From Epithemia pelagica (taxonomy: Eukaryota > Protista > Bacillariophyta), in the NCBI GenBank assembly GCA_946965045.2, contig OX337241.1, positions 2,604,001 to 2,668,000 of the forward strand: a stretch of DNA of 64,000 nucleotides, in the 5' to 3' direction. The notes below the pieces were generated by a model. The model ran no database searches and was not told the origin of the DNA. It was given only the letters and a program-made list of their open reading frames with translations. Of the stretch, positions 31,141 to 51,899 are shown piece after piece; positions within the stretch are counted from its first letter, which is position 1; the number at the start of each line of letters is the position of its first letter. The position numbers were made by a program, and so were the translations under genes.

Positions 31141-34100
31141 TCACTCTTCTGTCGCTAGTTCCACGGTTGCATCTTTTTCGCTCGTTTCAGCTCGGAGGGT
31201 AGTTTCTATCCCTTGATCTGATGTAGCGTCATCCTTCGTGCTTTCTGTTTGCAATCTTGTTCCTGGAGTTCCTTCTTCTTCCTGATCATTTTTTTCTTTG
31301 TCTTCGTCGTCTTGTCCGGAGGACGCATACTCTTCTTCAATTTTGCTCTTCGATACTGTCCCCGAGAGCTGGCTCAGCATGCCCGTAGAGTTCTCGGACT
31401 CTTTCCTGTTTCTCGAAAAAACACTTCTTCTGCTGGAGTTGGAGTGGTCGAGGCTACCAATCGACGACGAAAGGCGCCGAGCCACTTCGTGAACAGCTTT
31501 CGCTTCCTTGTAACGAAGCCATGCATTGGAGATGACTTCCACTGAAAGCTCGACCTTTTTCAACAATCTTAACTGCCACATTTGATCACGGATGTTGGCT
31601 CCACTAACTGGAGAAGCTGTTGTTGCCACGCGCATAATGGAGTGGGTTCGATCCATGCGGTATCGTAACAGTCCAAACGAGATTCTTTCAAAGAATGTTT
31701 CAACACGACGCCCCATTTGGTGAAACATGACCGCCATGGAGACAAACCGCTGCACACTCCCAATGCGGCTTTCATACAATTCCATTGCATGGTGCTGGCG
31801 ACGTGCGACAGAAAAGTCTAGAGAGCGCCCAGATTTACCCGAGTTGTATTTGCGCAGTGTCTCACCAAAATACTTCTCACGAGACGGTTCAATTTGAATG
31901 TTGCCTCGTATATCTCTCATACTTGGTGGAATCTTGAATCCGGATGACATGTCCGGATTTTGGAGCAACAGAGTGTGAAACTCTTCATAATCCAACGCCC
32001 CGCTGTTATCTACGTCTGCAATGTTGAATAGATGACGAAGCTCTTCAATTGTGTATTCGCTACCAGTTTAAAGAAGTCCCCATCCATTGATATATTCTTC
32101 TTCGGACACTAGGCCATCTTTGTCCAAATCCAGGATTTCAAAAAGATTCCGAGTTTCGTCTGACCATTTCTTTTCTTCGATGGCGGAAGTCATTATCATT
32201 TCAATCGACCAGTCTGCTGACTTGGATTTCCTGTACCACCATTCTTACCACTCTCCTCGAACGCTCTGGTGGATGCTTGAGATGAATACTTGATTCACGA
32301 TGCCGACTTAAGGCAAATGGATCCACATGTTGGGCCACATTCGAACTGGAAGTGCCATCTTTAGCAAAATCCGACTCAAGTAAGACACGTTCCGAAAGAA
32401 ACAAAGGGCGTTTCCGTTTGAGAAAAATTCCGTGCTTACTTAGCGGAAGCTTGAACGGGTTGTGCTGCACCAAGAATACACGAGAGTTATGCCCATTTGA
32501 TCGTATTGCCATAGGAACAAAGATTTCAACACCACTCACTCCTATTGTGATACTCTCGCAGGTTCCTCCATACGACTGGATAGAGGACGCTTGGTTCACA
32601 GAGAGACAAACCGAAGCCTCCGCAGTCGTCAATGCTGATAGTTGTCCATCTGGCCTCCACAAACTAGCAACGTTCCCCTTGTCACTCGATGAGTGTGTCG
32701 ATGCACCAAATGATCCGAAGGATTCCCACTCAACACGTTCAATCCTGCAATACTGTACGACACGGCAAATATCTTGGACAGAAAGGCTTCGGCACATTGA
32801 GCTACCCAAGGAATGTCACCAATCACGACTGTTCTTCCCACCATGCGGTGACGGAGATTTCGGCGTTGGAGAATACGCAGCAGCATAATATTGATTTGTG
32901 GCATCCAAAAATACAGCGCTGCGTCGATCGTGCGTATTGCGTAAATCCAGTCATTCGAGTCATCTAGCCCGGCGGCATGGGCAATGGCATATGCAAGAGG
33001 GAAACCGGATATTACAGTCACAAAGATGTAGACGAAGGTCATCATGTACGCTCTTGCATTTTCCAGAACATGGTCGGCCCAAACGTCGCCAGCTTTCCGT
33101 AATTCCGATTCGACAATGTCTTTGTGCTCGATCCTCAAGCCGTGGTGGCTAACTCCAACAATTTCACTGAGAGCTTCCAGGTTGTCTCTGTTACAGCGCT
33201 CCAAGATTTGCAAGTCCTGCTCCGATATTGTCGCACCGGTAGTTTGCCGATAGCGCATATCGCTGATGATCAAAACAGAAATATACTCAAAAAGGTTGGT
33301 CAACAGTTGATGAGTAGCAACCACTGATATCTGCAAATACCAACATAATTCGGTGTAAGTTCCAATGCAACACAAGAAAAAATGAAATCATAGGGTTGTC
33401 TTACAGAGCAGGGTTCGGCTGGACGGAAACCAACTTCGGTCGTGAATATCCGACTGCGGAACAGTCGTTCCATGGAGGCATCCGCGTTTTTCTCTGTAGC
33501 ATCCATGGCCCGGAGCTGGTTTCCAATGTTTGTATCCCATTCGGACGTGACCGTAAAGATTTCTTTTGTCGAACTTTGCAACAGATTGCTGCAGGCTAGA
33601 GCGGCAAACGATGCACCACTGTGGCTGACAATAATGACCACAGTATCCGTAAGGTCCAGCGTTTTGGCCGACTCCGGAAAGCCAAAGGCTGGCACCGGAA
33701 CGTCTTGACCAAACAGACCAAGTAGTTTGTTGCTGCTGATTGCCTTGGTAACGAGTTTGGGGAATGAGTTTTGAATATCACTGGCAAATTGTTCGGCCAA
33801 CCAAAGGGACACTTCACATCCCGTCATGAGAATATCGACCGCTTGACTGCTCCGCTTCCCTTAGACACGGGCATCTAGCAACCGCCGTAGCGCTCGCGAT
33901 AATGTGTGAGCCGTCAGACGATTCATACTGGTGGCCGCCCGATTGGAATGCCAATCCTCTTGAATATTCGCACAAACTCGAGGAATATCCTCAATGTCCC
34001 TCAAAATCAAATCTCGACATCCATCATCTTCCGGCAAGGGTTTGACTTTCCGATTGCGGGACAGTCGTACCATGCGATGATAGATTTGCTTGTCATCCGC

Positions 34101-36820
34101 ATGTACCGTACCCACTTTGGATTCATGAAAAATCACCGCTGTGAGTGCCCCATTCATGAGTTTGTGGTGAGTCAAGGTTCGATTGGGATACGAGACGGGA
34201 GAACTTCCTGGTATGTGGTTTCGGTCAAAGTCCAAGAGAAGAATTTCACCACCAAGATCTATAACGAATACCCGCCGCCACAATTGTGAGAACAACACAA
34301 CGAGAAAACATGACAGGACAGACGCAAACTCAACGTACCATCCAGGTCTAACCGGAGGGAATCATTGTCTACGTCCAAGGTACTATGATCCAAATCGTGG
34401 GCCGCATTGCCGGGAAAGGGAACACCCAGTCCAGCCTTGACCGCTCCTTGATCGGACCCATAGAGGATCATACCCTTGCGGGGGTAAAAGGCCAAACTGA
34501 TGCTTTGTCCCCGCGCGGCCAAGCACAATTGCCGGTGCGCATCCAACGATGATGTCACGGCAATGCCAAAGGATCCGGCCGCATTGGCCATAAACATTTG
34601 TGTGGCCGACATGAGGTCATTGTCAAAAAAGGCCCGAATGGTGGTCATGCAAAAGGCCTGGAGGGAGGCTCCTCCTTCATCATCGGTGATAAACTTGTCC
34701 AAACCGGATTGAAAGGAAAAGAATTCGGCTCGTCGATTCTTGAGTTTTGAAACGACTCTCCACGTAAAGGCCTTGCGAAGACCGGGAGTTTTTTCGAGTG
34801 CACTGAGTGTGGTAGTTTTGAGCATTTCCTCCAAGGCTTCTTCAAAGACCATACCAATGGCTTCAAAATGACTGTAGGGTGGAAAGGTTCGTGTGGATGT
34901 CGCCTTGCTGTTCCTTGTCTTGTTCTTTGACGACGCCGGCTCACAGGCCAAGATAAACTCAAAGAGTGAACTGGGTAAGGACGAGGCCAATCCCAAACAA
35001 ATGGCATAGCGGGCACTGAGGCCAAAACATCCTTGGGTCCGCAACACATCCATGACACCGGCAATGGCACAGGAATCCACTTGGGCCGGTAAGGGTGCAT
35101 CCAAGACGCGTTCCAACCATTTTTGGACTTGCCCCAGTTCGTACGAGTTGCCATTGACGCGATAAAAATCAAAATCGCCATTGTGTGTGACATAATTCTC
35201 CACGAGGAGCACTTGGGGAGGTTCCCAACACGAGGATGGAGTGGTCGCACGAGCCGTATTAGTATGCGAGGTGGAGGAGGTGGAATCGGACGAGGACCCG
35301 GTGCTGGACTCGGTCGTCAAGGCACCACCACCGCCTCTTTGTGACTGCTGCTGATGATTGTTGTTGTTGTGATGGTGGTGAGTTGTTTGGTGTCGCATGC
35401 GGGAGAGGCAAAAGACCCGTCGAGGTGCGGGTGGGGACCATCGATGCGGATGGGTATCCGGAATGGTGGCCTTGCTCGAAGTGGCAAAGCGTGTATGACC
35501 AAACAAGACGGGGACAAACGAGGGTGGAAACAACAACTTTTGGTGGTGGTTGGGGGAACAGCAGGTTGTTGTTGCCGTCGTAGTAGTAAAGTGATTGTCA
35601 CGGGCCATGGTTTGACGCAACAAGACACTGAGATCGGATCGTTTTTGATTGACAATGCGTGTTCGAATGCCCCGCAATTGGACCAGACCATGATCCGCAG
35701 GGTCTTGAGTTTTGCTCGTTGATTCTTGTTCTTGTGGTTGTTGTGGTTTGGCTGTTCCTCCTCCCCCTTGTTCCTCTCCATTTGGAATGGTGCGCAGCAT
35801 GGCTTCCTCTGTTTCGTGGTTGTTGTGGTCATTGCTTGTTGAATTGGGATTGACAGTGCTGCTCGTCGTGGCTGGATTGGAAGGTGCTTGTGGTGGCGGA
35901 TAGTTGCATCCAGCAAGGCAATTGGTCGTCGTCGTATTGGTAGTAGTGGTAGGATGAAAACACACGACGCCACCCGCTTGCGCGCCGCGCATCATGGTGA
36001 CTTGAATCAATTTTTCCAAAATGGACAAGGACGCTTGCGTGCCACCGGTATCTTGAGAAAACCAGGCATGATGCAACAAAATCATGCCAAAATTGCCACA
36101 GGCAAAACAAACAAATTGTTGGCTGCTAGTAGTGGACGACGACACGAGACCCGCCACTTGAGGTCCGTGCAACAAATCGGTCCACACGGCTTCGGCGGCC
36201 GTCACCCATGCCGCCCAGTGCAAGGGCGACACTCGCCGATCCAAGGACACGGACGACAAGGACCCACAGTGTTGGCCGCTCGCCGTCCAATGTTGATGTT
36301 GTGGACGACGACAACGGTTCCGATATTCCAGTGCCATTGCGAGCAAGAGACTGAACATCCATCCTACATGTCGAATCCAAGGAATGGCATTCTCCACGAG
36401 TTGTGGTTCGTTGCTATTCGTAGTTGTTGTGGACTGAAGTTGCAGGAGGAATTCGACGGGCAGAATCAATTGACGACCCACGAGCAAGGAATACCAAAAT
36501 TCGATGGATTGGAACAACGACGACGACGACAAGAAGGCGATCCAATCAGCACCATTTCTGTGATGATTGATCCACCACAGGGCCACGACCGCATGCGAAA
36601 CTTCATGCACTATACCACACACGAGATACCAAACCACGGCTTGACAATGCCAGTTCCATCTTCGTTCGTCTTCTTGTTGTTGATGCTGCCGTCGTGATAG
36701 TAGTGATGATGGTGATGGTGCGCTGCTGTCTGGAACTGGACCGCCTTGCTTCATTTCCCCGGCCGTCCTCCCACCTGTGTCCTTGGTGTGGCAACTTGGT
36801 ACTACCAGGATCCTCTTCAT
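31141..36820 (-). pseudogene. Paralog A of the HExxH-membrane/Ntn-amidotransferase/SIS/EF-hand fusion, multiply disrupted
   Basis: Introns 34259-34338, 33331-33404 and 32465-32539 are at the same positions as in paralog B. TAA at 33861-33863, a 1-nt deletion near 32655, and a further frameshift and TAA at about 32060-32260. Confidence 0.85.
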
Positions 36821-37291: not shown

Positions 37292-40200
37292 ATGGTTACT
37301 TCAACGCGTTCTAACACGAAAACGGCTGCTACCGCAACTGGGACTCAGGGCGGTAGTGGAGGAAGCGGAAGTGGAAGCGGAAGCGGAAGTGGAAGCGGAA
37401 GCACAGGAGCCTCGGAAACTGGCAGGGATCGTACTTCACGCCATGGCGCGAGTACGGGAGCTGGAGCCGGCACTCATGCCGGAGGAGGGACGCCAGGAGC
37501 TACTACCATGGGGACTGGCGCCGGGACAGCGGCCGGTGCGGCCGTGGGTGGAGGCATGGCTCCTGATGCAGGTGCAACTGGAGGTGCACCAGGAGGTGGC
37601 GCAGGAGCTGGCGCTGCGGGAATGGGAGGCGCTGGTGTTGCTGCCGGCGCAGGAGGAGGAATGGCAGGCGGAGGCGCCGCAGCAGGAGTACCTGGCGGCG
37701 CAGGAGGAGGTGCTGGAGGGCATGGAGCAGGCGGAGGCGCTGGTGGAGGCGCTGGTGGAGGCGCCGGTGGAGGCGCTGGTGGCGGTGCTGGAGGTGGCCC
37801 AGCAGGAGGCGGTGGTGGCGACGGCGGCGCTGGAGGAGGAGGAGGAGGAGGAGTACCTCCAGGCGTGCCTCCCCCACCATTGTCTGCAGTCGGGATGGCA
37901 CTTACTACTTGTGGGGCCAATCCCTACGAGATCTACGCGCTTGAGCATACGGAAAGGCTTAACACAATCGCAGCCTTCGGACGAATGACCTCTGAAGACG
38001 TGACGAACCTTGTGTCCCGACTCGAGAAGCGTCCGTACCCTCACAGTGTAACCATCCCTACCAGTGTCATCAAGAACATTCAAGGTTTGTGCTTCTGGTC
38101 CGCCAGGGCGCGTCGCCAGGGGCGTCGCCTTCAATATGGCGATTTCGATCAGGACGCACTAATGGAATCCCTCGACGCTATGGAAATTCAAGCCGAGAAG
38201 ACTTCTTCGCCGGATATTAAGCCCTCTGCCCTCAAGGAAGATGACTGGGAAGATTGGAGTCAGGAGTTCCCTACCTACCTGTCCCACATATTTGGCAAGC
38301 AGAAGGCCCCGTTGGACTATGTGATTCGCCCCGACTTGGATCCCGCACACGTTTTTGCAAGTACCCGTGAGCAGGAACTATACAGCTACCCCCTCGGTGG
38401 TCCGTATTTTCGTGAAGACAACAAGGAAGTGTTTAGGTTGTTGAGCGACTTGGTCAAGGACCAGCCAGCAACGTGGATCCAGCCTTTCCAAGCGTCGCAA
38501 GACGGACGTCGTGCCTGGTTGGCACTCGTGAACCATTTCAATGGCGGTGGACAAAAGGAGAAGCGGATCTCCAAGGCTGAGGCCGTCCTTGACACTCTGT
38601 ACTATAATAATGAGCGTGTTTTTAGTTTTGATGCTTATGCGTCTAAGCTATTACGTGCATTCCGGACTCTCGACAACACACCCAATCGGCGTACCCCGTC
38701 CAACCAAGTCAAAATCCTCATCGATAACATCAAGATCACGTCGGCTGAGTTCGCGGTCATTAAAGGACACGTGCGTAGCAACCATCGCATGGACCTGCAT
38801 GCCGCAATCGATTATATTTCACGTGAGATTGCCGAAATCTTTCCTGATGTCTCGATTGGAAATCGCCGCGGTCAGGCGCGTCATCGATTCGTCTCGGAAA
38901 CCGCCTCTCAAGCGGCGTCTCGACCACGCAACTTCGCTGGATTGTCGCATAACAACGGCATCTATACCTTTTATGGTGTAGATGTCACCGATGTGACGCG
39001 ACGTTTCACATCGCAAGAAATGATCACTCTTGGAACGCAAGGACAGGCGTACATTCACCAAGAAAGGGCTCGGTTGCGCGGGCAAGGTGGTGGTCGTGGC
39101 GGCCGTGGTTTCGGCGGTCGGGGACGAGGAAACTATGGCGGCCGTGGTGCTGGTGGACGTGGGGTTGCCGAGATCAGCACAAGTGGCGACCAGTCTGTTA
39201 TCACGGACATCACCAACGACCAAGGGGACCGCACGACAGCGGCGGAAACGGGGACAACAAACACTGACAGGGGCAGCCACAATGGCCGAAGATTTGGAAA
39301 CGGGGCATATGAACAGGGAAATGGGAATGAAGAGGAAAGTAGTCGTACAGGGGGAAGAATCTCCGTTGTGAATTGTGGACCGCAACGTCGCGTAGGAAAA
39401 GTTGAAAAGGGTTGGTTGTTGGAAAGTGATTCCGCCGTGGGAAGGAACGAGATGGACACGATGGCCGACACTTGTTGTGCCGGCAAGAATTGGGCACTGG
39501 TAGAAACTACTGGCATGGAATGCACAGTAAACGATTTCGCGGGGAATCAAGTGGGCAGGACGTCGGTACCTGTTGCAACATGCGCCACGGTGGTTAGAGA
39601 AAGGAAAACAGGAGTCGAAATTGTGGTGATCGGACACCAGATGTTATGGTTTGGTAATTACCTAGATAAATCTCTTCTTAACCAAAATCAGATTCGGCAT
39701 GCTGGACACGAAGTGAGGGATGATCCGACAAGACAAATGAAAGAAGGATTTGGGATTTGGGTGGACGGGGTCCACATTCCGTTTGAAGTACAAGGCACGA
39801 CTGTGTATTTCGAGTCACGTGCTCCTACTCAGCACGAGTTGGAAAATCTACCGTCGATAACACTCACGAGACAGGAGCTATGGGACCCACAGAATGTGGA
39901 CATCACCCAACAGGATTCAAGTCCGTATCTGGAAGCATATGGTGCAAGCATGGCGGGCATTGGGGAAGTGTCTCGCGTGTTGACGCCGCAAGGACTTGCT
40001 TCCGAATTGGCTAGCATCCCGCAAGTCCGACAGGTCGAGAGCTCGCGACATTCTGCCGTGACGGCCGAATCTCTCAGTCGCAAGTGGAAGATTGGTCTTG
40101 ATACCGCAAGAGCTACCCTCCGAGTCACCACCCAACAGGGGATCCGGACAGCTATATCACCTATTACACGTCGCTATCGCGTGGACAATCTAGCCTTGCA

Positions 40201-43200
40201 TCGGAACAGGCTCCAGACAAGATTTTATACGGATACATTATTTTCTAAGACATTGTCTTTGTCAGGAAACAAGTGCGCACAGATCTTCACCGACGGGCAG
40301 TTCACGACTGTTTATCCGTTATCTAGCAAGAGTCAGGTCGGACAGGCCTTGTCGAGCTTTATTGATGAAGTCGGAATCCCAGATAGACTTACCGCCAATC
40401 TGGCCGGTGAACAAGCCGGGGACTCAACCTTATTCAAGAAACTCGTTCGATTGCATCGCATTGACATGCAATGGGCGGAGCGTCACACGGGCAAACAAAA
40501 TCATCGCGCCGAACGTGAGATTGGCCTTTTAAAACAACGTTGGCACCGTTGCATGATGGAGTTGGACGTACCTCGTCGTCTATGGGATTTTGGTCTCGTC
40601 TACGAGGCCGGTGTTTTAAGTCGAGTCGCCCGGGGACCAGATATGCGCTCCGGCGTTGAACGACTCTCCGGCAACACGCCTGACATCTCGGAATGGACCG
40701 ACTTCTCGTTTTATGACGTCGTTTGGTACCACAACAATGTCAAGGCTGACGCTACCGATGATCCAGTGCAACTTGGCCGGTGGCTTGGAATAGCACACAG
40801 GATCGGGAGCGACCTCTGCTACTGGATTCTCACCAAGAGCGGAAAAATTATCGCAAGAACCACCGTCCAACACGTCACCGAGGAGGACTTGGCGAAGCCC
40901 GAAATGGAAGGACGTATTCGACAGTTCAAGTTGATTGTTGAGGAAAGGTTGGACGATCGGAACTTTACGGACAATAGCAAGAATGGACCCGGTTACTTGG
41001 AAGACGTAGATTTGGAGGAAGAAAAGCGGGGACGTGCCGGGGTTGTACCGTCCGATGAAGAATACGGTGGAATGATAGTTGAACAAGCTCCCGAGGCAGA
41101 TGAGCACGGGGATGGATACGACAACTATGTCGGGGCACAAGTGCAGGTCGATATCGGGGGAGAAACGATCCTGGGAACGGTAACAAAGAGACAGAAAGGG
41201 TTAGACGGCAAGCCAGTGGGAAGGGCGCATCGGAATCCGACGTTCGATACACGGACTTACGAAGTTAGTTTTCCAGGTGGATTGTTACATGAGTATACCG
41301 CCAACATAGTGGCGGAGAACCTTTACTCAAGATTGGACAACGAAGGGAAGAGGCATCTGGTGATCAAAGAGATCGTCGGACACAGGAAAGACGGGGACGC
41401 CGTCCCGCAGGAAGAAGGCTACCAGTATTCATCCAATGGTAACAAACACCCGAAAAGGACAACGAAAGGGTGGGAGATAGCAGTCGAATGTCGTGACGGT
41501 ACCCAGATTTGGATACCTCTCAAGGATGCAAAGAATGGATATCCTCTGGAACTTGCCGAATATGCGATTGCGCAGGGAATCCAAGACGAACCGGCATTCA
41601 AGTGGTGGGTACCACAGACGATCAACCACATCCGCCGCCTGGTGAAGAAAGTGAAGAAAAAGTACTGGAAGACGACACACAAGTATGGGGTGAAACTCCC
41701 GCATTCGGTCGATGAAGCGCTGAGGATTGATGAGCAGACAGGTACTAGCCTATGGAAGAACGCCATCGACAAGGAACTCCGAGTAGTCAAAATAGCATGG
41801 GAAGCACGGGAAGACCTAGACCTGGACGAGGTGAGGGCAGGAAGGCAACTTGTGGGCTATACTGAAATAAAGTGTCATATGGTCTTTGACGTAAAAATGG
41901 ACCTTACTCGGAAGGCGAGGTTGGTCGCGGGAGGACACATGACGGAAGCGCCAGCCAGTCTTACTTACTCAAGTGTCGTGAGCCGAGATTCCATTCGCAT
42001 CGCTTTCTTGGTTGCTGCACTAAATGGACTGAACGTTTTAGCGTGTGATATTGGAAACGCGTACTTAAACGCGCCGTGCCGAGAGAAAATATGGTTCCAT
42101 GGTGGACCCGAAGTTGGAAATGAATTTCAAGGAAAGGTATGTGTCATGGTGAGAGCTTTGTACGGATTGAAGTCGTCAGGGGCGAGTTGGCGGGCAACAT
42201 TAATGGCGACGCTGTATGACATGGGATTTTCGGACACGCAGGCCGATCCTTGTGTACTACGGCGAAAAAGGAAGAAGTCAACAGGAGAAGAGTATTATGA
42301 GCTTATGTTAGTATATGTAGACGACATTCTACTGGTGAGCGAGGTTCCACAGGAAGTACTCGACCAAATCGACAAACACTACAAGATCAAGGCCGGTAGC
42401 ACAGGGGAACCGACTGTATACCTAGGTGCCCAAATATACAAGCACAACCTTCCGAATGGATCATGGGCCTGGGGGATGTCGAGCGAAAAATACGTCAACA
42501 ACGCCATCAAGATTGTGGAGGGACTCTTGGAAGAAGACGGGGACGGGAAGAAATTGAAATCAACCGCCAAGGTCCCAGTATCGTCGTCTTACAAACCTGA
42601 GCTAGACATGAGTCCGGAGCTCAGCCCAGCCCTCACATCACGGTATCAACAGTTGATTGGTATATTGAGGTGGGCCGTGGAGTTGGGTCGGGTGGATATA
42701 TACCTGGAGGTATCGCTCCTTTCCCAATTCTTGGCCAATCCACGGGTCGGCCACCTGGAAGTGGTGTACCACATCTTCGCATTCTTGAAGTCTCACCCGA
42801 AATTGAAGATGGTCTTCGACCCGATGAACGTGAACCTTGATGAGAGTTGTTTCCCACAAGTGCCCATCGATGAATGGAAGGAGTTCTATGGCGACGTGGC
42901 CGAGGAATTGCCTGTGAAAATGCCCAAGCCCCTGGGACGGCCAGTTACCATCACTTGTTTCGTAGACGCAGACCACGCGGGGAATGTGGTCACTCGACGT
43001 TCTCACACCGGGATTGTTATCTTCATACAGAATGCCCCGATCTTGTGGTATTCCAAGAGGCAGAATACAGTGGAGTCGTCAAGCTTCGGAAGCGAGTTCG
43101 TGGCACTCAGGATCGCTAAAGAGATGATTGTTGCCTTAAGGTACAAGCTCCGAATGTTTGGTGTGCCTGTTCCTTCACCGGCGAACATACTCTGTGACAA

Positions 43201-43474
43201 TCGTGGTGTCGTGAAGAACACCAGCATACCTGCTTCCGTGTTGAATAAGAAGCACAATGCCATCAACTACCACTCAGTCAGGGAAGCCGCGGCTGCATCA
43301 ATCTTACGAGTTGGGAAGGAAGATACCGAAACCAACATTGCAGATTTGTTCACAAAGATCCTGCCACGAGAACGGAGAAACGTGCTTATTTCGCAATTTA
43401 CTTATTCTTCGGCGTTTGGTCCAGGGGGGCCCCCATCCATTGCGAACAAGCGCGTATCCCCCGCTCACTTCTAA
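37292..43474 (+). CDS. Single-ORF gag-pol polyprotein (2,060 aa), apparently intact
   Basis: Gly/Ala-rich N-terminus; PR MDTMADTCC; INT YTDTLFS and QNHRAE; RT CDIGNAYL, LYGLKSSG and VYVDD; RH FVDADHAG and FGSEF. Confidence 0.96.
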   Translation: MVTSTRSNTKTAATATGTQGGSGGSGSGSGSGSGSGSTGASETGRDRTSRHGASTGAGAGTHAGGGTPGATTMGTGAGTAAGAAVGGGMAPDAGATGGAPGGGAGAGAAGMGGAGVAAGAGGGMAGGGAAAGVPGGAGGGAGGHGAGGGAGGGAGGGAGGGAGGGAGGGPAGGGGGDGGAGGGGGGGVPPGVPPPPLSAVGMALTTCGANPYEIYALEHTERLNTIAAFGRMTSEDVTNLVSRLEKRPYPHSVTIPTSVIKNIQGLCFWSARARRQGRRLQYGDFDQDALMESLDAMEIQAEKTSSPDIKPSALKEDDWEDWSQEFPTYLSHIFGKQKAPLDYVIRPDLDPAHVFASTREQELYSYPLGGPYFREDNKEVFRLLSDLVKDQPATWIQPFQASQDGRRAWLALVNHFNGGGQKEKRISKAEAVLDTLYYNNERVFSFDAYASKLLRAFRTLDNTPNRRTPSNQVKILIDNIKITSAEFAVIKGHVRSNHRMDLHAAIDYISREIAEIFPDVSIGNRRGQARHRFVSETASQAASRPRNFAGLSHNNGIYTFYGVDVTDVTRRFTSQEMITLGTQGQAYIHQERARLRGQGGGRGGRGFGGRGRGNYGGRGAGGRGVAEISTSGDQSVITDITNDQGDRTTAAETGTTNTDRGSHNGRRFGNGAYEQGNGNEEESSRTGGRISVVNCGPQRRVGKVEKGWLLESDSAVGRNEMDTMADTCCAGKNWALVETTGMECTVNDFAGNQVGRTSVPVATCATVVRERKTGVEIVVIGHQMLWFGNYLDKSLLNQNQIRHAGHEVRDDPTRQMKEGFGIWVDGVHIPFEVQGTTVYFESRAPTQHELENLPSITLTRQELWDPQNVDITQQDSSPYLEAYGASMAGIGEVSRVLTPQGLASELASIPQVRQVESSRHSAVTAESLSRKWKIGLDTARATLRVTTQQGIRTAISPITRRYRVDNLALHRNRLQTRFYTDTLFSKTLSLSGNKCAQIFTDGQFTTVYPLSSKSQVGQALSSFIDEVGIPDRLTANLAGEQAGDSTLFKKLVRLHRIDMQWAERHTGKQNHRAEREIGLLKQRWHRCMMELDVPRRLWDFGLVYEAGVLSRVARGPDMRSGVERLSGNTPDISEWTDFSFYDVVWYHNNVKADATDDPVQLGRWLGIAHRIGSDLCYWILTKSGKIIARTTVQHVTEEDLAKPEMEGRIRQFKLIVEERLDDRNFTDNSKNGPGYLEDVDLEEEKRGRAGVVPSDEEYGGMIVEQAPEADEHGDGYDNYVGAQVQVDIGGETILGTVTKRQKGLDGKPVGRAHRNPTFDTRTYEVSFPGGLLHEYTANIVAENLYSRLDNEGKRHLVIKEIVGHRKDGDAVPQEEGYQYSSNGNKHPKRTTKGWEIAVECRDGTQIWIPLKDAKNGYPLELAEYAIAQGIQDEPAFKWWVPQTINHIRRLVKKVKKKYWKTTHKYGVKLPHSVDEALRIDEQTGTSLWKNAIDKELRVVKIAWEAREDLDLDEVRAGRQLVGYTEIKCHMVFDVKMDLTRKARLVAGGHMTEAPASLTYSSVVSRDSIRIAFLVAALNGLNVLACDIGNAYLNAPCREKIWFHGGPEVGNEFQGKVCVMVRALYGLKSSGASWRATLMATLYDMGFSDTQADPCVLRRKRKKSTGEEYYELMLVYVDDILLVSEVPQEVLDQIDKHYKIKAGSTGEPTVYLGAQIYKHNLPNGSWAWGMSSEKYVNNAIKIVEGLLEEDGDGKKLKSTAKVPVSSSYKPELDMSPELSPALTSRYQQLIGILRWAVELGRVDIYLEVSLLSQFLANPRVGHLEVVYHIFAFLKSHPKLKMVFDPMNVNLDESCFPQVPIDEWKEFYGDVAEELPVKMPKPLGRPVTITCFVDADHAGNVVTRRSHTGIVIFIQNAPILWYSKRQNTVESSSFGSEFVALRIAKEMIVALRYKLRMFGVPVPSPANILCDNRGVVKNTSIPASVLNKKHNAINYHSVREAAAASILRVGKEDTETNIADLFTKILPRERRNVLISQFTYSSAFGPGGPPSIANKRVSPAHF

Positions 43475-43487
43475 AGCTTGCGGGGAC

Positions 43488-43654
43488 TGTCTCATTCCGG
43501 CTGATACACGAATTCTGACCCGATACGGGACACATACGTCAGAAATACAACGGTCATTACCGTTTACCGTTTTACTGGTTTCATGCGTTGAATGTAGCGT
43601 AATTCTTCATCTTAATCTTTCCTTGGAGTGGATTCTATCAAGTAGAATAAGACA
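43488..43654 (+). repeat. 3' LTR (167 bp)
   Basis: Matches 37081-37247. Confidence 0.97.
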
Positions 43655-43808
43655 CAAGCCCCCAAATTCGTCAATCCATGTTTTCAAAGTTTTGGGAACC
43701 AAACACAACAACACGGCAACGACAAAAGAAGACGAAGAAGAACCATTGTATTGGATCATCCTCTTGCTCTCTCTCTCGAGCGCTACTACGTACCTATACA
43801 CACACACC

Positions 43809-45701
43809 ATGAAACGAACACGACACTACGGCCATGTTCCCTTGGTCCTTCCGACCACCACCAGCAAGGAGGAGGATTGCCGTTCGACAACAACGACAAC
43901 AACAACGACACATTCGAATCGTTCGGCCACAACAGCCACAACAAATGTCTATCAACCCGACTATGCGGCCTTGCTGGCCTATTGTGCGGCCTGGTCCTAT
44001 GCCTCCCATGCTCGCTTTCAACGACACGTGCAACAAGCCCTACAAGCCATGTACCACCACAACCACAACAAGAGTACGGGCACCCATTCCTCCTCCACGA
44101 AACACACCACTACTACCAAGCTGCATGTGGTGGAATTGCAAGCTCTGGATGTGTCCCGTTGCATTGTGGCCACATGTCAACTCGTTTCGTTTTATCGGTC
44201 GGACCAGGAACGAGTCGTTCTCGTGTGCTTTCGAGGGACGGAACCGGCCAATTTCTTGAATTGGGGCACCGATGTGCAAGCCACACTGGTGCCCCTCGAC
44301 GACTCGGAACAATCGTCGTCCACAGCAACGACAACCACCCAGTCATCATCATCATCGTCATCGTCGTCACAATGGTCCTGGAACCGTCGTCGCACCAAAC
44401 ACGACCGAGAGGATGCATCGAATTCCAATCCGAAAGAACAACAACAAGAATCACAAATACAAGAGAAGGAGGAAGAGGAGGAGGAACCATCATTGGAGGA
44501 GGATACTGATGATAGGGATATTGCCACTCCCACCACCACCACCCAAAAACCGACACCCCCTCATTGGATCGCCACACGACACTTGGAGGAGGACCCGGTA
44601 CAGCAAGGTGGTAGCAGTACTGCCAGCACTTCTACCAATCCTTCCTCCAGTCGTCTCTTGGCACACAAGGGGTTTGTCCTCAATTTTCGGGCCGTGTGGG
44701 ATGGACCCGACGGCATTTTGGCCCATTTGATGCAGCCTCATCTCTTGACGTCACCCACACCAAAGGACAATGACAACAACAATAGCAATAGCAATAGCAA
44801 CAACAGTACCAGTACAAGTGCTACCTCAACAACAACCACCACCACCACCACCACCACCACCACAACCACCACAACCACCACAACCACCACCACCGCCACA
44901 GCTCCGCCCAGTACACACTTGTACTTGACGGGTCATTCTCTGGGAGGTGCCATGGCCGTCTTGGCTGGTTTGGAATTGGCCACGCGCCATGCCGACTTGT
45001 ATCGCAGTGCCGTCCGGGGCATTTATACCTATGGACAACCCATGGTGGTGCCACCGCCGTGTCGCGAGACGGCCCACCATCTCATTGGGCACGACTTGTT
45101 TCGTCACGTCTATCGCAACGATTTGATCCCCCAAGTCCCACCTCAACCCATGGGACGGTTTGTTCATGTGGGACAAGAATATCGACATGGTGCTGGTTCG
45201 GCCAGGACCACACCACTCCTACCGGGTGTCTTGGGACCCCGGTCCAAAAATCACCAGCAACAACACAATCCAAACGATACTTCACAAAAGAGCACCAGTA
45301 CTGCTTCGTCGGCGTCGGCGGCGTCGTCATCATCATTGACAGGATCCAAACAACTGCAACAAGATGCAACACAACCTCCTTGCTCCGCCGGTTGGTACCC
45401 ATTGGGTCCGGACGAAACGGGGACGACGCAATTGTTGACAGCCTTGCCAACCCTGCCCTTGGTGTTGACCGATGCCGTCGTGCGGGTCATTCCAGGAGGA
45501 GGCTTGGTGACACGCACCGTCCCAAGTCCTTGGTCCATGGCCGATCATGTTCCCTATGGCTATGTCCACTCCTTTGAGGCATCCTGCTCGTGGTTGCCCT
45601 GCTTGTGGTTGCCACAAGTAGGCCGACCAGAATCACTTCGCGGGGAGGGCAGTGACGACACCAAGAACGACAAACCATTCTGGAAAGCAATGTCCGTCTA
45701 A
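43809..45701 (+). CDS. Class-3 (fungal-type) lipase, 630 aa, with low-complexity inserts
   Basis: VCFRGTE, AHKGF, LTGHSLGGA (nucleophile elbow), YTYGQP, NDLIPQVP and DHVPY. ATG at 43809, 155 bp after the LTR. Confidence 0.9.
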   Translation: MKRTRHYGHVPLVLPTTTSKEEDCRSTTTTTTTTHSNRSATTATTNVYQPDYAALLAYCAAWSYASHARFQRHVQQALQAMYHHNHNKSTGTHSSSTKHTTTTKLHVVELQALDVSRCIVATCQLVSFYRSDQERVVLVCFRGTEPANFLNWGTDVQATLVPLDDSEQSSSTATTTTQSSSSSSSSSQWSWNRRRTKHDREDASNSNPKEQQQESQIQEKEEEEEEPSLEEDTDDRDIATPTTTTQKPTPPHWIATRHLEEDPVQQGGSSTASTSTNPSSSRLLAHKGFVLNFRAVWDGPDGILAHLMQPHLLTSPTPKDNDNNNSNSNSNNSTSTSATSTTTTTTTTTTTTTTTTTTTTTTATAPPSTHLYLTGHSLGGAMAVLAGLELATRHADLYRSAVRGIYTYGQPMVVPPPCRETAHHLIGHDLFRHVYRNDLIPQVPPQPMGRFVHVGQEYRHGAGSARTTPLLPGVLGPRSKNHQQQHNPNDTSQKSTSTASSASAASSSSLTGSKQLQQDATQPPCSAGWYPLGPDETGTTQLLTALPTLPLVLTDAVVRVIPGGGLVTRTVPSPWSMADHVPYGYVHSFEASCSWLPCLWLPQVGRPESLRGEGSDDTKNDKPFWKAMSV

Positions 45702-45824: not shown

Positions 45825-48800
45825 TCAGTCCATTCGAATCTTGTGTGGCTTCAATGCATTCGTGTTCGTACCCTCTGGTTCACAAACATCTCCTGAATGT
45901 TGGCTTTCTCCACACTCGGTGTCTTCGGCAGAGGAACGGTTTTGCGCCCATTGATGAATGTCCCTTCCTTTCTTGTACTCCAGCCACGCCGAAGAAATGA
46001 CCCGAACCGAGTGTTGAACATGCCGGAGCAGACGCATTTGGTACATTTGGTGTCGAATATCAGCTCCACTCACAGGGGAGGCTGTTGTTGCAATACGCAT
46101 TATGGAATGGGTTCGATCGAAACGGTACTTCCATAATCCGCAAGAGATGGATTCAAAGAATCTCTCTACTCTTCTGCCCATTTGATGGAACATGACAATC
46201 ATGCAAACAAACCGCTGCATGCTGGCAATGCGGCTTTCGTACAATTCCATTGCATGTTCTTGACTCCGAGCAACTGAGAAGTCCAGGGTTTTTCCTCGCT
46301 TTCCAGAGTTGTACTTGCGAAGCAGTTCGCCAAAGTACTTCTCTTCTGAAGGCTCAATCTGAATAAGACCACGACTGTCACGATGGCTCGGAGGTACACT
46401 GAACATTCCCTGTAGATAAAACAGTGCTGTTCATCAGCAGAGTTCGAAATTCATCATAATCCAAAGTTCCTGTATCATCAGTATCTGCCATATGAAAGAG
46501 GTCAGTAAGCTCCTCTGCCGTCATCGTTCCGGTGTGATGCTTGGACCAGCCTCGAATAAATTCATCCTCTGTCAAGACACCGTCATTGTCCCTATCGAAA
46601 GCGCGGTACAGATGATGGATTCGATCCGACCATTTCCGGTCTTCAGCTGCCATTTTGATAATCATATTGATGGAATTTTCAACCCTGTGACTGTCGACCC
46701 CAGCTGATGATGATGGAGAGTCGGCGGAGGTTTTCGACTTGTTCTCATGGTCTTCTGCAAAGTTTCGAAATCTTCCAAGCAGAGCAGCAGCAGATTCTTT
46801 CCGATGGAGGACAGGGCGAACACTGGAGTCGCGGTGGTAGCTCAAAGAAGGGTCTAAAAAGTCACCGGAGTCCTTGTTCACAATACCTCCCAACAGACAT
46901 TTCATTCGATTCCATCCTTTGACTTGTGCTTCTGATTTGTTTCTCGAATCGATAGTAGATCTCCCCTCCGTCATGGCGTCCGACTCTAACAACATGCGTT
47001 CACAAAGAAACAAAGGCCGTTTCCGCTTGAGAAAGATTCCTAGTTTACTCAATGGAAGCTTGAACGGGTTGTGCTGTAACAGAAACACAATCAGCAGTCA
47101 GTTCATGCAAAACACACATGCGCTTTCCAACCAACCATACTTACTCCAATTGTGATACTCTCGCATGTTCCTCCATACGACTGGATAGACGACGCTTGAT
47201 TCACTGAAAGACAAACCGAAGCCTCCGCAGTTGTCAATGCCGAGAGTCGCCCATCTGGTCTACCACAAACAAGTAAAGTTCCCCTTGTCACTCGATGGGT
47301 GTGTCGATGCACCAAATGATCCGAAGGATTCCCACTGAGCACGTTCAATCCTGCAATACTGTACGACACTGCGAATATCTTGGACAGAAAGGCTTCGGCA
47401 CATTGAGCTACCCATGGAATGTCGCCAATGACGACTGTACGTCCCACCATGCGATGAAGGAGATTGCGGCGTTGGACAATACGTAGCAGCATGATATTGA
47501 TTTGTGGCATCCAAAAATACAGTGCTGCATCCATGGTGCGGACTGCGTACATCCAGTCGTTCGTGTCATTGAGGCCTGCGGCACGGGCAATGGCATACGC
47601 CAGAGGATATCCCGAAATGACTGTCACAAAGATGTAGACAAAGGTCATCATGTACGCTCTCGTATTTTCCAGTACATGGTCGGCCCAAACGTCTCCAGCT
47701 TTCCGTAATTCCGATTCGACTACAGTGTTGTGATTCTCAAGATTGCCGCGTTGTGTGGTTCCCACAATTTCACGTAGAGCATTCACGTTATCCCGGTTGC
47801 ACCGTTCCAGAATCAGCAAATCTTGTTCGGTAATACAAGCTTCTGTTATATGGCGATATCGCATGTCGCTGAGAATCAGGACTGAAATGTCCTCGAAAAG
47901 GTTGGTAAAGAGTTGATGAGTGGCAACAACGGATATCTGTTTCAAAGTGAAGAAAAAACGGACATGAGGAATGAAGCACCATCATGCCATACACTAGATA
48001 CAAGATGTGACACGTACCGAGCAGGGTTCTGCCGGTCGGATGCCCACCCCGGTCGAAAAAACACGGCAACGAAAGAGTTGATCCATGGCACTATCGTTCG
48101 AATCGCCCATGGCATCCATGGTTCGAAGTTGTTTCCCAATTTGAGTGTCCCATTCCGACGTGACGGCAAAGATTTCGTTGGTCGAGCTTTGTAAGAGACT
48201 GCTGCAGGCCAATGGCGCAAAGGTTCCACCACTGTGACTCACAATAATGACAATCGAATCGTGTAAATCCAGCGTCTTGGGCGATTGGGGAAACCCAAAG
48301 GCTGGCACTGGAATGTCCTGACCAAACAAACCAAGAAGTTTGTTGCTGCTAATCGCTTTCGTGACAAGTTTGGGAAAGGCTTTTTGGAGATCACTAGCAA
48401 ACTGTTCGGCAAGCCAAAGAGACACTTCGCATCCTGTGAGCAAAATGTCTACCGCATGGGTGCTTCTATTACTCGTCCCATTGATGCGACCATCCAACAG
48501 CCGACGAAGAGCCCGTGATAACGTGAATGCAGTGAGTCGATTGAGGCTTGTCGCGCCATGATGTGCGAGCCAATCATCTTGAATGTTGGAGCAAACCTTG
48601 GGTATGTCTTGAATGTCCTTCAAGACCAAATCGGTACAGTCCTGATTCTCGGGCAATGGCTTGACAAATTTGTTGCGCGACAGGGGAACCATGCGGTGAA
48701 AGATCTGAGGATCCGGAGAGGACATGACCTTGGATTCTTTGTACAGAACCACTGTAACATGTCCATTCATGAACGTGTGGCGTGGCAACTCTTGGTTGGG

Positions 48801-50956
48801 TACCGACACGGGTGACGTCTTGTCTTTGCCAAAGTCGAGGAGCATTACCTCTCCTCCAAGATCTGTGAATCATCCGTCGTGAGCAAAGAAAGAATCATGA
48901 GACAAACTTTCATGCTTGCCACAGGATAGGATACGCACGCTGGCCACACAATACATTCCTCCTAATACTACGTACCATCCAGGTCCAACCTCAAGGCATC
49001 ATTGTCCACATCGCCCAAGCTGTGATCCAAGTCGTGCGCGGCATTGCCGGGAAAGGGCACTCCCAATCCAGCCTTGACGGCGGCTTGTTCCGACCCATAC
49101 AAGACGAGACCCTTGCGGGGATAAAAGGCCACACTCATGGTTTGTCCCCGGGCCGCCAAACACACTTGGCGGTGGGCATCCAAGGACGATGTCACACAAA
49201 GGCCAAAGGATCCACTGGCATGCGCCAAAATGGTTTGTGTGGTAAAGAGCAAATCATTGTCCAAAAAGGCATGAATCGTGGCGAGACAAAAGCTAAAGAG
49301 AGAAGTGCCACCCAAATCTTCGGGGTCGTCCTGTTCGGTCTCTTGCAGGTCTTGCAAAAAGTGGGAGACTCCCGTAGCCTGCAACAATTCTTGTGTTCGA
49401 GCACGGAGTTTACTCACCACCCGCCAGGCAAACGAGGCTCGAACACTGGGCGATTGATCAATGGTATTCAAGTCGGTCGTCTTGAGCATTTCCGTCAAGA
49501 CATGTTCAAAAACACCTCCAATACGTTCCAAATCTCGGTAGGAGGGAAACGAGTGGGCAGTCGACTCGTTGTTGTTGGTAGGAGTAAGAAACTCCAAGAG
49601 GGTCCGCGTCCACGGGGCCGATAAATCTCGTCGTTCCATGCCCAAACACAGGGCATACCGGACACTGGTTCCAAAACAAGCTTGCGTTCGAATCAAATCC
49701 ACCAAACCGGCAATGGCGCCCGAATCCACATTGCCGGGACGCGGATACTGCAAGAAATGTTCCAACCACGTTTGAATGGCATCCACCGATACCGTTTGTC
49801 CATGCAACCGATAAAACTCCAAGTCTCCATTGTGAGTAATATAGTGCTCCACTGGAACAAGGCGGGGTTTCTTGGCCATGGCCGTGGGAGAGGAGGAGGA
49901 GGAGGACGACGACATGGAGTCGGGGGTTCGCTTCGGACTGTCATGCCGCCATTTGGGGTAGACGCGACGCGGGGACGGTGGTGTCCACTGTTGGAATTGA
50001 GTATCGGGCAAGGTGGCCTTGCTGGAGGTCGCAAATCGGGTATGACCACAAAACACGGGACTCGAGTCTGTGGGAAACGGTCCGCCCGACGAGAACCAAC
50101 GATGGGTGGGCAACCAGGATGATGATGATAACAAGCCATTGTCGTGAGCCACCTTATGGCGCAACAAGACACTCAAGTCGGTTCGTTTTCGATTGACCAC
50201 ACGAGATCGTACTCCCACCAATGACACCGAGTCTTGACCCGTACTAGTAGCAGTTTTGGAAGATGGACGAGGATGAAAACACACGACACCACCCGACTGT
50301 GCTCCACGCATCATGGTGACTTGAATCAATGTTTCCAAAATGGAGAGTGCTGCTGGTCCATCCCTGGCATCCGAATGCTGATTCCTCCACCAGGCGGGAT
50401 GCAACAAGAGCATGCCAAAATTGCCACAGGCAAACACGTGCGGAATTAAGACAGCACCACCACCAGCAGGCCACGCCAAAAAGGAGGACTGAATGGGAAG
50501 AATGGGCCATTGCAACAAATCGGTCCACAGGGCCTCCGCAGCCGTCACACAGGCCGCCCACTGCAAGGCACAAGACCAAGTCGTAGTAGTAGTAGTAGTA
50601 GTAGTCGCAGCTTCAGAAGCAATGCCTCGGTTCCGAACGTAGTCAATTCCCAGAGCCACCAAGCAACTGACCATCCATCCAGCATGCCGAATCAGATCCA
50701 TCTGCCAAGGATCGACTTCTCCTTCTTCTTCTTCTTCCACTGGCTCTACGACGGTCCACACGACAAATTTTCGACCCAGTATCAAGTGATACCAAAATTC
50801 CCCGGACCACCCGGCCACACTCGTCTTGTGTGGTAATAGAACAATCGTTGCCATCCCATAATGTGCCAGTTCATGAATCATGCCCATGGTCAGATACCAC
50901 ACCAGGGCGGACCACCACAGGGTGCGCCAGTTCCAAACGGGGGGTGGTTCCTTCAC
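45825..50956 (-). CDS. Paralog B: about 1,620-aa HExxH-membrane domain + class-II (Ntn) glutamine amidotransferase + SIS-like + TM hairpin + 2 EF-hands
   Basis: Exons 50956-48976, 48862-48018, 47936-47145 and 47073-45825 (GT-AG). Motifs HELAH, CGNFG, RGAQSG, GHTRFAT, THNG, VSHSGG, DRDNDGVLTEDE and DTDDTGTLDYDE. One apparent +1 frameshift near 46408, which could be real or an assembly error. Confidence 0.8.
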
Positions 50957-51899
50957 ATCAAAATATTGTGGTCACAACGAAAGCGGCGTGCTTGCCATAA
51001 ATTGTTGGAAGATGAAGCCGTCGATCCAAAACGCGTTTCTCTTCCGATCCGCAGCAGTCGGTAAAACGTGCCATCCACACAAAGTTTGGAACCAACCAAA
51101 ATAGAAAGCGGCAAGGACGACGATGCCATACAATCCACATCCTTCAAACGTGACAGGTTCCAGCCCTTCTCGTCGGTTGTGGTGTATTTGCATCATGGAA
51201 CAAACTAGAACAGGATGACACACACCAAAGTTCTGGCACTTTTCGATGGGAGGCTTCGCATCCTTCGAGATGATGTATTGTAGTATGGAGGTGTGTCATC
51301 CCCGTTCGATTGGGATCAACAGAATTCCCTTCTTGTTGGTACCCAATCTGTCATTCTCCATACGCCAACCGATGGATGGTGTGGAAGCCTTCCAGTGGTT
51401 CTGCCACTTTCATGCGTTTCCCACAGCATTCAACCAAGAGCGTACAGACACGGTGTGGTTGCCGAACTTGATACCTCTGGAAAAAAACAAACATTCAAAA
51501 GGAGAGAGACGTATGGTCCATCCTGAATTCCCATCCTTCTTCCAACCCCGGAGGATCCGTCGCCATCCTCATGGTCGCAGAGCCTTGCTTGCAAATTGCA
51601 ACCATCTTCCTGAACATTGACATGGTAGTGTGAGCGTGACACATCACAGACACGGTGTTTTGCTTTCGTCGGCACGTCGATGCGAGGCCACACGTGCCGC
51701 CTCGGATGCAACGCGCCTGCATGGATCTTTTCTGATCGTGATCCCGTCAAAAAGATCCAAGAGCACGTTTGGAACTTTGGAAAGATCGAGCATCTGTCTT
51801 GTCGGACGGTTGCTTCCCCGTTTCCATAGGGTTCGATACAACGAGTCCATGACAGTCATTTCTCTCTGGCTGGTGAAACCGGAGACTCTCTGGTGAAAC

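Follow-up and report, generated by a model that had tools for sequence, protein, structure and literature searches.

A candidate membrane-anchored zymogen: an internal-cysteine class-II glutaminase domain behind a probable site-2-protease-like leader in the diatom Epithemia pelagica and other algae

How does an N-terminal nucleophile (Ntn) amidotransferase work, or how is it unmasked, when its catalytic cysteine lies behind a membrane domain of ~150 residues? The question is raised by a gene on the minus strand of a 64,000-nt stretch of the diatom Epithemia pelagica genome (assembly GCA_946965045.2, contig OX337241.1, positions 2,604,001 to 2,668,000; hereafter the window). This gene, called here gene B, occupies 50956-45825, and a paralog, A, lies in the same window. 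In class-II amidotransferases the general base is the free alpha-amino group of Cys1, and the few residues that precede this cysteine are removed autocatalytically (PMC9140057). The catalytic cysteine of gene B is residue 177 of the precursor, and in homologs it lies at 100-300. The product is very likely a polytopic membrane protein that consists of a leader, a glutaminase, SIS domains, a transmembrane hairpin, EF-hands and a C-terminal domain. The favoured reading, held tentatively and with somewhat less than even confidence, is that it is a zymogen activated by cleavage before Cys177.

The product of exon 1 was modelled with AlphaFold2 on the exon-1 family alignment (mean predicted local distance difference test (pLDDT) 81, predicted template-modelling score (pTM) 0.71). 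In the model, residues 10-147 form four helices and residues 153-177 are disordered; a beta-rich domain follows from residue 178. Foldseek returned human GFAT-1, the glutaminase domain of E. coli GlmS, and PurF as the best PDB matches. By VIA-align, GFAT-1 superposed with Z 20.4 (root-mean-square deviation (rmsd) 2.8 A, 232 residues, 19% identity), GlmS 1xff with 18.3, PurF with 16.4, and EgtC and AsnB with ~12. These matches give the domain the alpha-beta-beta-alpha Ntn fold. Model residue 177 falls opposite the catalytic N-terminal cysteine, which is chain residue 1 in E. coli GlmS and PurF and residue 2 in human GFAT-1. In the ESM Atlas a GATase_6/7 cluster was matched (TM score 0.87), the match beginning at residue 176. 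The internal position of the nucleophile, proposed at first from the sequence, is found in the model as well.

The class-II motifs listed in the original prediction are all present and, like the leader motifs, were re-located at their minus-strand coordinates (Table 1). In the exon-1 alignment (105 homologs) C177-G-N-F-G, G218, R307 and D411 are invariant, and conservation reaches 90% or more at R217, GHT(R)FAT, T310, N376-G377 and many other positions; the motifs are not chance matches. Judged by the order of the motifs, R217-G218, R307, T310, N376-G377 and D411 correspond to Arg26, Arg73, Thr76, Asn98-Gly99 and Asp123 of GlmS. A motif-length hhalign comparison with the single E. coli GlmS sequence pairs GHTRFATSS...THPH with AHTRWATHG...AHPH. 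Because Cys177 superposes on the catalytic cysteine and the glutamine-site motifs are conserved, the modelled domain looks like a catalytically complete class-II glutaminase. Pfam GATase_2, GATase_6 and GATase_7 gave no match at E up to 0.1. Pfam, NCBIfam, and PDB sequence (phmmer/hmmsearch) or profile searches with any exon or family profile returned the EF-hands only, and nothing above threshold for GATase, SIS or M50. The GATase and SIS domains are detectable by structure comparison, not by sequence-family searches.

The leader that precedes this domain is probably site-2-protease (S2P)-like, as judged from its model, without proven membership in family M50. When the exon-1 model was aligned exhaustively to 48,161 PDB representatives, the top membrane-protein matches of residues 7-153 were the Kangiella RseP orthologue (Z 7.9, 129 residues, 19% identity), SpoIVFB (7.1), MjS2P (6.9) and Aquifex RseP (6.0). 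These four are every site-2 protease entry listed, and unrelated membrane proteins score Z 6.1 or below. The zinc ligands of SpoIVFB are H43, H47 and D137 (PMC11486902); in the aligned ranges (chain 25-142 against model 8-151), H28 and H32 fall near H43 and H47, and D146 near D137. A motif-length hhalign alignment places the family HExxHxxxAxxxG on H22-G34 of the single E. coli RseP sequence. Peptidase_M50 is the commonest weak Pfam match of the leaders (14 of 113 members, best E 0.004; Prymnesium leader, E 0.0096), and M50B matched one of the 113. An Atlas feature search with one leader listed a "Peptidase family M50" cluster first (score 0.77), a lead only. The M50B-type resemblance originally suggested is thus retained as a resemblance to M50 and site-2 proteases in general, and its assignment to M50B specifically is not. 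An identity with DUF6678, matched by one of the 113 leaders under the gathering score (E 8e-4), was dropped.

The leader is under strong constraint. Across the leader-covering sequences Y21, G25, H28, E29, H32, R62, G93, W94, S97, E141 and D146 are 97-100% conserved, and the HExxH is kept in ~99% of orthologs. In 170 homologs 13-48 residues (median 23) separate the invariant Asp and the Cys. The residue before the cysteine (P1) is Phe, Tyr or Leu in 145 of them (85%) and never Met; P2 is Phe or Leu in 139 (82%). Complete transcript ORFs (open reading frames) of 1450-1660 residues from many diatoms (MMETSP, EukProt) start upstream of the HExxH and run through CGNFG and SIS, and through the EF-hands where the motif scan found them. 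These transcripts include the leader and do not place the cysteine at the N-terminus. No leaderless homolog beginning Met-Cys-Gly-Asn-Phe-Gly was found among ~290 fetched proteins, and almost all of the sequences that lack the leader are truncated ORF calls rather than true leaderless forms.

The second half of the enzyme was modelled on a homolog, P0098 (residues 381-1114, 58% identical to gene B by tblastn), in place of joined exons 2 and 3, because the intron between them contains a stop. The alignment comprised 103 sequences including the window exons (pLDDT 80, pTM 0.75). Foldseek matched the model to GFAT-1 and to isolated GlmS isomerase domains (E ~1e-9). VIA-align to the GlmS isomerase gave Z 27.0 (rmsd 2.7, 316 of 357 residues) across both SIS subdomains, which upholds the GlmS-like SIS segments as a double SIS domain. 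The phosphate loop SHSGGT is paired by hhalign, over motif length, with SQSGET of GlmS. Two long hydrophobic helices, residues 346-382 and 402-429 of the P0098 model, lie between the two SIS halves, in agreement with the transmembrane hairpin predicted. The structural alignment extends no further than about GlmS residue 570, and the sequence beyond it is unconserved with pLDDT <50 until the EF-hands. For this reason the GlmS C-terminal tail with catalytic Lys603 is taken to have no counterpart, as the original prediction had it. From the order of helices and strands, read by eye, GlmS Glu488 would fall on an invariant Ser-Lys, and His504 would lie beside an invariant Asp-His in NPxDHxVHRxTHR.

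Overall, the closest known enzymes are GlmS and GFAT (EC 2.6.1.16; MEROPS C44). In them, too, two SIS domains follow a class-II Ntn glutaminase; they provide the best structural match for both halves, and have in common with gene B the Cys, Arg-Gly, HTRxAT, Asn-Gly and Asp motifs of the glutamine site and the S-x-S-G-x-T loop. The gene B family differs in that its cysteine is internal, behind a leader of ~150 or more residues; its glutaminase carries a helical insertion; and a transmembrane hairpin between SIS1 and SIS2 would embed it in the membrane. The Lys603 tail is not alignable, Glu488 appears by eye to be replaced by Ser-Lys, and there are two additions, a pair of EF-hands and a further C-terminal domain. 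Its sequence is too remote for Pfam, NCBIfam or PDB profiles.

The two canonical 12-residue EF-hand loops seen in the sequence are confirmed by Pfam (EF-hand_1 8.5e-13, EF-hand_7 3.9e-11, with EF-hand_6 also matched; E 1e-11 to 1e-12). The C-terminal domain that follows has no match in Pfam or the Atlas, and it is present in diatom, haptophyte and cryptophyte members. The family comprises hundreds of clusters and hundreds of intact orthologs. Its named relatives are diatom proteins (Mayamaea, Fragilaria, Cylindrotheca, Seminavis, Thalassiosira and others). A search with a distant homolog, L002, extended it to the haptophyte Prymnesium parvum, the cryptophyte Guillardia theta, Closterium, and GC-rich organisms. 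The Prymnesium and Guillardia proteins and several other distant members show HExxH...RHxGW...[ST]D...CGNFG...HTRFAT and a C-terminal RIATTA[AS]P, plus the SIS loop in those in which the scan detected it, and no EF-hands. Since the EF-hands are absent from these members, the pair is probably a diatom addition, and the core of leader, glutaminase, SIS, hairpin and C-terminal domain appears from these sequences to be old. Membership of the charophyte Closterium is probable; in the motif scan no HExxH was found in the fetched Closterium record and a few others.

L002 itself (JAIYDP010000129.1), the only hit with a bacterial label, is assigned to a Verrucomicrobiaceae metagenome-assembled genome. 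It holds a 30%-identical family member without EF-hands, and an adjoining gene with broken frames and the motif NGSGKHNNWS, read by eye as glutamine-synthetase-like. Because the family member has frame changes and the neighbouring genes are broken, L002 is taken as a misbinned eukaryotic contig rather than a bacterial member. In Epithemia clementina two members, P0154 and P0193 (ACA910_009849 and ACA910_009847), sit on one 885-kb contig, two locus tags from each other; tandem paralogs in such proximity, as in the window, may be a conserved arrangement in raphid diatoms. Database names are "hypothetical" or "EF-hand domain-containing", and three UniRef members are named "Glutamine amidotransferase type-2 domain-containing protein". 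The GATase domain has therefore been partly recognised automatically, and the SIS, S2P-like and hairpin parts are absent from all source names seen. No paper on this fusion architecture was found in the literature searched. The folds are known; the combination, and the mechanism it implies, are new.

Gene B is not the single reading frame that a span of 45825-50956 would imply. Five open stretches resolve into four exons by tblastn of long homologs and inspection of the junctions; the final 193 codons (46406-45825) fall in the +1 frame. Once joined, exons 1-4 form a single frame of 1437 codons. The splice of exon 1 to exon 2 yields LDLD/DLGGE, and intronless homologs read LRLDLDDLGGE without interruption; the third junction (SITIG/HNPFKLPLS) is likewise uninterrupted in them as SITIGHNPFKLPLS. 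A 48%-identical gene in an ENA assembly shares this four-exon layout, and a single 383-residue ORF covers its EF-hands and apparently also its C-terminal domain.

Four public runs (X1-X4) contain the gene B locus, and their reads were compared over 5,501 nt. X3 is RNA-like, as inferred from its spliced contigs; no RNA run is on record for Epithemia pelagica. Its joint 47936/48018 skips exactly 48017-47937 (81 nt, CT..AC ends), which shows intron 2 spliced. One X3 contig stops at 48976 and has a loose end that matches the first bases of exon 2, which shows intron 1 spliced, and X3 read depth is low across that intron. Another contig begins precisely at 47145, the border of exon 3 and intron 3. 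Between the leader and the glutaminase domain X3 is colinear with the window. Gene B appears to be transcribed and spliced. An in-frame TGA at 50974-50972 leaves it with no in-frame ATG ahead of Met24, and the conserved WNW...WY residues sit upstream of Met24. A search for an upstream start gave only out-of-frame upstream ORFs and no X3 splice. These are two overlapping frames 5' of the gene, beginning at ATG 51140 and ATG 51129, of ~60 codons each and ending at 50958 and 50953; X3 is colinear through both.

Table 1. Coordinates in the window of gene B, its domains and motifs, and paralog A
Feature	Position	Strand	Remarks
Exon 1	48976..50956	-	660 codons, opening at GTG 50956; Met24 (50887) is the first in-frame ATG
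S2P-like membrane domain (probable)	50504..50935	-	Residues 8-151; helices 10-43 (HExxH), 83-115 (RHxGW, S97), 125-147 (E141, T145, D146); AlphaFold2 model
HELAH (H28, E29, H32), putative zinc-binding/catalytic motif	50861..50875	-	99% conserved
IRHAGW	50692-50675	-	Sequence
WTDLL with D146, candidate third metal ligand	50513..50527	-	C-terminal end of last leader helix; D146 100% conserved
Linker, residues 152-176	50429..50503	-	Ends in hydrophobic P4-P1 HVFA before Cys177; pLDDT <50 for residues 153-177
Class-II (Ntn, PurF-type) glutaminase domain	48976..50428	-	From Cys177; long, mostly helical insertion (~residues 425-580) between Asp411 and the last beta-strands
CGNFG	50428-50414	-	Cys is residue 177 of the ORF opening at GTG 50956
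MRGAQSGG	50311-50288	-	Sequence
GHTRFAT	50047-50027	-	Sequence
THNGD	49837-49823	-	Sequence
VDSGAI	49729-49712	-	Sequence
Intron 1	48863..48975	-	113 nt, GT..AG; splice donor G/GTACGT at 48976/48975
Exon 2	48018..48862	-	Glutaminase end, linker, first SIS subdomain; tblastn of long homologs
SHSGGT, SIS1 phosphate loop	48239-48222	-	Exon 2; near-invariant
Intron 2	47937..48017	-	81 nt, GT..AG, in frame, stop-containing
Exon 3	47145..47936	-	Remaining SIS1, transmembrane hairpin, SIS2
Two hydrophobic helices, transmembrane hairpin between SIS1 and SIS2	47657-47586, 47528-47475	-	Exon 3
GNPSDHLVHRHTHRV in SIS2	47333-47289	-	Exon 3
Intron 3	47074..47144	-	71 nt, GTAAGT..CAG
Exon 4	46378..47073	-	SIS2 end, non-conserved linker, EF-hand pair; frame stop TGA 46380-46378
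EF-hand pair	46626-46432	-	Loops DRDNDGVLTEDE (46596-46561) and DTDDTGTLDYDE (46485-46450)
+1 frameshift between EF-hands and C-terminal domain	46400..46415	-	4-nt insertion relative to paralog A; B/A DNA alignment
C-terminal domain (IQIEP...ELYESRIAS...DRTHSIMRIATTASPVSG)	45825..46406	-	+1 frame in copy B; 72% amino acid identity to paralog A
Paralog A, same architecture	31144..36820	-	ATG 36820; HEVSH 36607-36593; Cys residue 241

Both copies in the window carry lesions. In paralog A, where the HEVSH (residue 72) and the cysteine lie as originally described, the assembly sequence is interrupted by an in-frame TAA (33863-33861) and lacks one nucleotide near 32655, within the CGRPDG motif of SIS2. 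At the copy B frameshift (~46408) the X1, X2 and X4 contigs match the window letter for letter, and the X3 allele has an additional 1-nt deletion at 46283; in orthologs the EF-hands and the C-terminal domain share one ORF. An intron that would rescue the frameshift was sought and rejected: no GT..AG pair of suitable length occurs there, and the X3 contig is colinear. Between A and B the ratio of nonsynonymous to synonymous divergence (dN/dS) is 0.09-0.3, and in the C-terminal domain pN is 0.20 and pS 0.87 (pS being saturated). Copy B deviates at 8 of 107 and 4 of 201 conserved positions. Given the low dN/dS, the few departures at conserved positions, and the ENA gene with the same layout, the lesions of A and B look recent or allelic rather than those of old pseudogenes, and copy B is probably a damaged allele. 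The functional argument therefore rests on the family, not on the copy B allele.

The start of gene B also lies close to a possible rearrangement junction. In a contig of DNA runs X1 and X2, the 27 letters before 50968 are those of window positions 60974-61000, giving a 61000/50968 junction with 3-nt microhomology. Depth over 50968-51200 is ~1.44x that of gene B. These data suggest a heterozygous tandem duplication or rearrangement of ~10 kb, with its left breakpoint 12 nt upstream of the B ORF and its right breakpoint inside an 875-codon ORF at 59683-62310 (-).

In the favoured reading the protein would be made as a zymogen, and a cut at [FL][FYL]/Cys177 would free the alpha-amino group for the Ntn amidotransferase. 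Nucleophile, oxyanion hole and glutamine-site residues are conserved in distant lineages, and the enzyme is taken for that reason to be meant to be active, so that it would have to be cut; the chances that such a cleavage step occurs are judged to be about even. The protease could be the S2P-like site, acting in cis or in trans within an oligomer, or Ntn self-processing could do the same. The S2P-like site would be the more parsimonious protease because its HExxH...D is invariant and always directly upstream, the Asp helix ends at the linker, and P4-P1 are hydrophobic and conserved. That the protein's own S2P-like site is the protease is nevertheless doubtful, and the fuller proposal, of a built-in intramembrane metalloprotease that cuts its own chain before Cys177, with this step or the freed enzyme gated by Ca2+ in diatoms, is to be regarded as rather doubtful. 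After cleavage the enzyme would be kept in the membrane by the transmembrane hairpin, and in diatoms it may be modulated by Ca2+. By analogy with RseP, whose Asp helix we take to exit to the cytosol, the Asp helix of the leader would exit on the cytosolic side; the glutaminase, SIS domains, EF-hands and protease-like site would thus be cytosolic. With Glu488 and the C-tail lysine seemingly absent, the SIS half would probably bind a sugar phosphate as an allosteric ligand, or carry out other chemistry, rather than canonical synthesis of glucosamine 6-phosphate (GlcN-6-P).

The known site-2 proteases (peptidase family M50: RseP, SpoIVFB, MjS2P) offer both likeness and precedent. The leader shares with them HExxHxxxAxxxG in a membrane helix, an invariant Asp ending a later helix, and a three-helix arrangement that retrieves the listed S2P structures as its best membrane matches. 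SpoIVFB activates pro-sigmaK by removing its N-terminal pro-sequence (PMC11486902), and RseP cuts RseA before a cysteine, at Ala108/Cys109 (PMC10024687). The differences are that the gene B leader has only three long helices, that the protein has no PDZ or CBS domains, and that the putative substrate would be the leader's own C-terminal neighbour.

Several observations weigh against the zymogen reading or its protease component. The leader Z scores of 6-7.9 are modest, and helical bundles can score so generically. No leader among the 113 members rose above the Pfam gathering score for Peptidase_M50 or M50B. The Asp motif ([ST]D[LF]L(G) in the family) is E-A-x-x-T-D-L-L-G, without the Asn and Pro of NxxPxxxLDG, and no re-entrant beta-hairpin is seen in the leader model. 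In the motif scan one distant member, P0241, seems to be without HExxH and yet has CGNFG. Recognisable equivalents of Glu488 and Lys603 were not found in the synthase half, and a glutaminase that has no acceptor site would more likely sense than catalyse. Copy B itself has TQFQ instead of the near-invariant THPH, no in-frame ATG and the frameshift.

The sensing argument leads to the rival that survives best, although it too is doubtful: the chain would stay uncleaved, the S2P-like domain would be an effector acting on other membrane proteins, and the blocked-Cys GFAT module with the EF-hands would be a glutamine and sugar-phosphate sensor that gates it. CBS domains gate SpoIVFB in such a way, and PDZ domains RseP. 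Regulatory domains are common in site-2 proteases, for example the CBS domain of SpoIVFB (PMC11486902), and a SIS half that keeps its phosphate loop while lacking recognisable catalytic equivalents would suit such a role. The invariant HExxH and Asp, and a transmembrane hairpin that ties the SIS module to the membrane beside the protease-like core, also fit a gated protease. However, the nucleophilic Cys and the oxyanion-hole Asn-Gly are conserved in diatoms, the haptophyte and the cryptophyte, which is more than ligand binding should need, and every characterised S2P is larger than the three-helix core.

Pure Ntn self-processing on the model of other Ntn hydrolases and C44 amidotransferases, in which Cys177 attacks the preceding peptide bond and the HExxH domain serves only as a membrane anchor or for something unrelated, for instance metal binding, is unlikely. 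Removal of residues before the catalytic Cys for activity is what class-II amidotransferases with propeptides (PPAT/PurF type) have in common with the favoured reading, and autocatalytic loss is stated for them (PMC9140057); the apparent combination in P0241 of CGNFG without HExxH would also be accommodated. But those propeptides are "a few amino acids" long and held to be self-cleaved, whereas a conserved, enzyme-like membrane domain of ~150 residues precedes the cysteine here, and self-processing leaves unexplained why an invariant HExxH...D stands directly upstream of it in diatoms, haptophytes and cryptophytes. Finally, a non-catalytic scaffold, or a gene decaying in this genome, with window copies that are pseudogenes and say nothing about the organism, is quite improbable: it accounts for the missing ATG before Met24, the TQFQ, the frameshift at ~46408 in all runs compared and the lesions of paralog A and the X3 allele, but it sits poorly with the low A/B dN/dS and with the few departures of a copy B that is apparently transcribed and spliced, and lesions in the window do not bear on the function of a family with so many intact orthologs.

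The surroundings of the two paralogs contain other elements. Between them lies a 2060-codon ORF (37292-43474, +) with integrase and reverse-transcriptase-like regions and a Gly/Ala-rich N-terminus, by eye a Copia-type retrotransposon. An 814-codon ORF (43257-45701, +) matches Pfam Lipase_3, the class-3 lipase domain (E 5e-16), with a GHSLGG motif. It contains extended tracts of Thr, Ser and Asn and converges on the 3' end of gene B, from which the X3 contig continues into it. Further away, a 39-nt tandem repeat of ~five units (58080-58274), inside an ORF at 57951-59303 (+), encodes an EEMATKE-like repeat.

If the zymogen reading with its built-in protease is true, this would be the first case of a metabolic enzyme that is fused to an intramembrane protease and activated by it, and the Ntn nucleophile would be unmasked by a new route. 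Because the family is large, spans several lineages and is under strong purifying selection, it probably serves a basic algal function. It sits where glutamine (nitrogen), sugar phosphates (carbon), Ca2+ signalling and regulated intramembrane proteolysis could meet.

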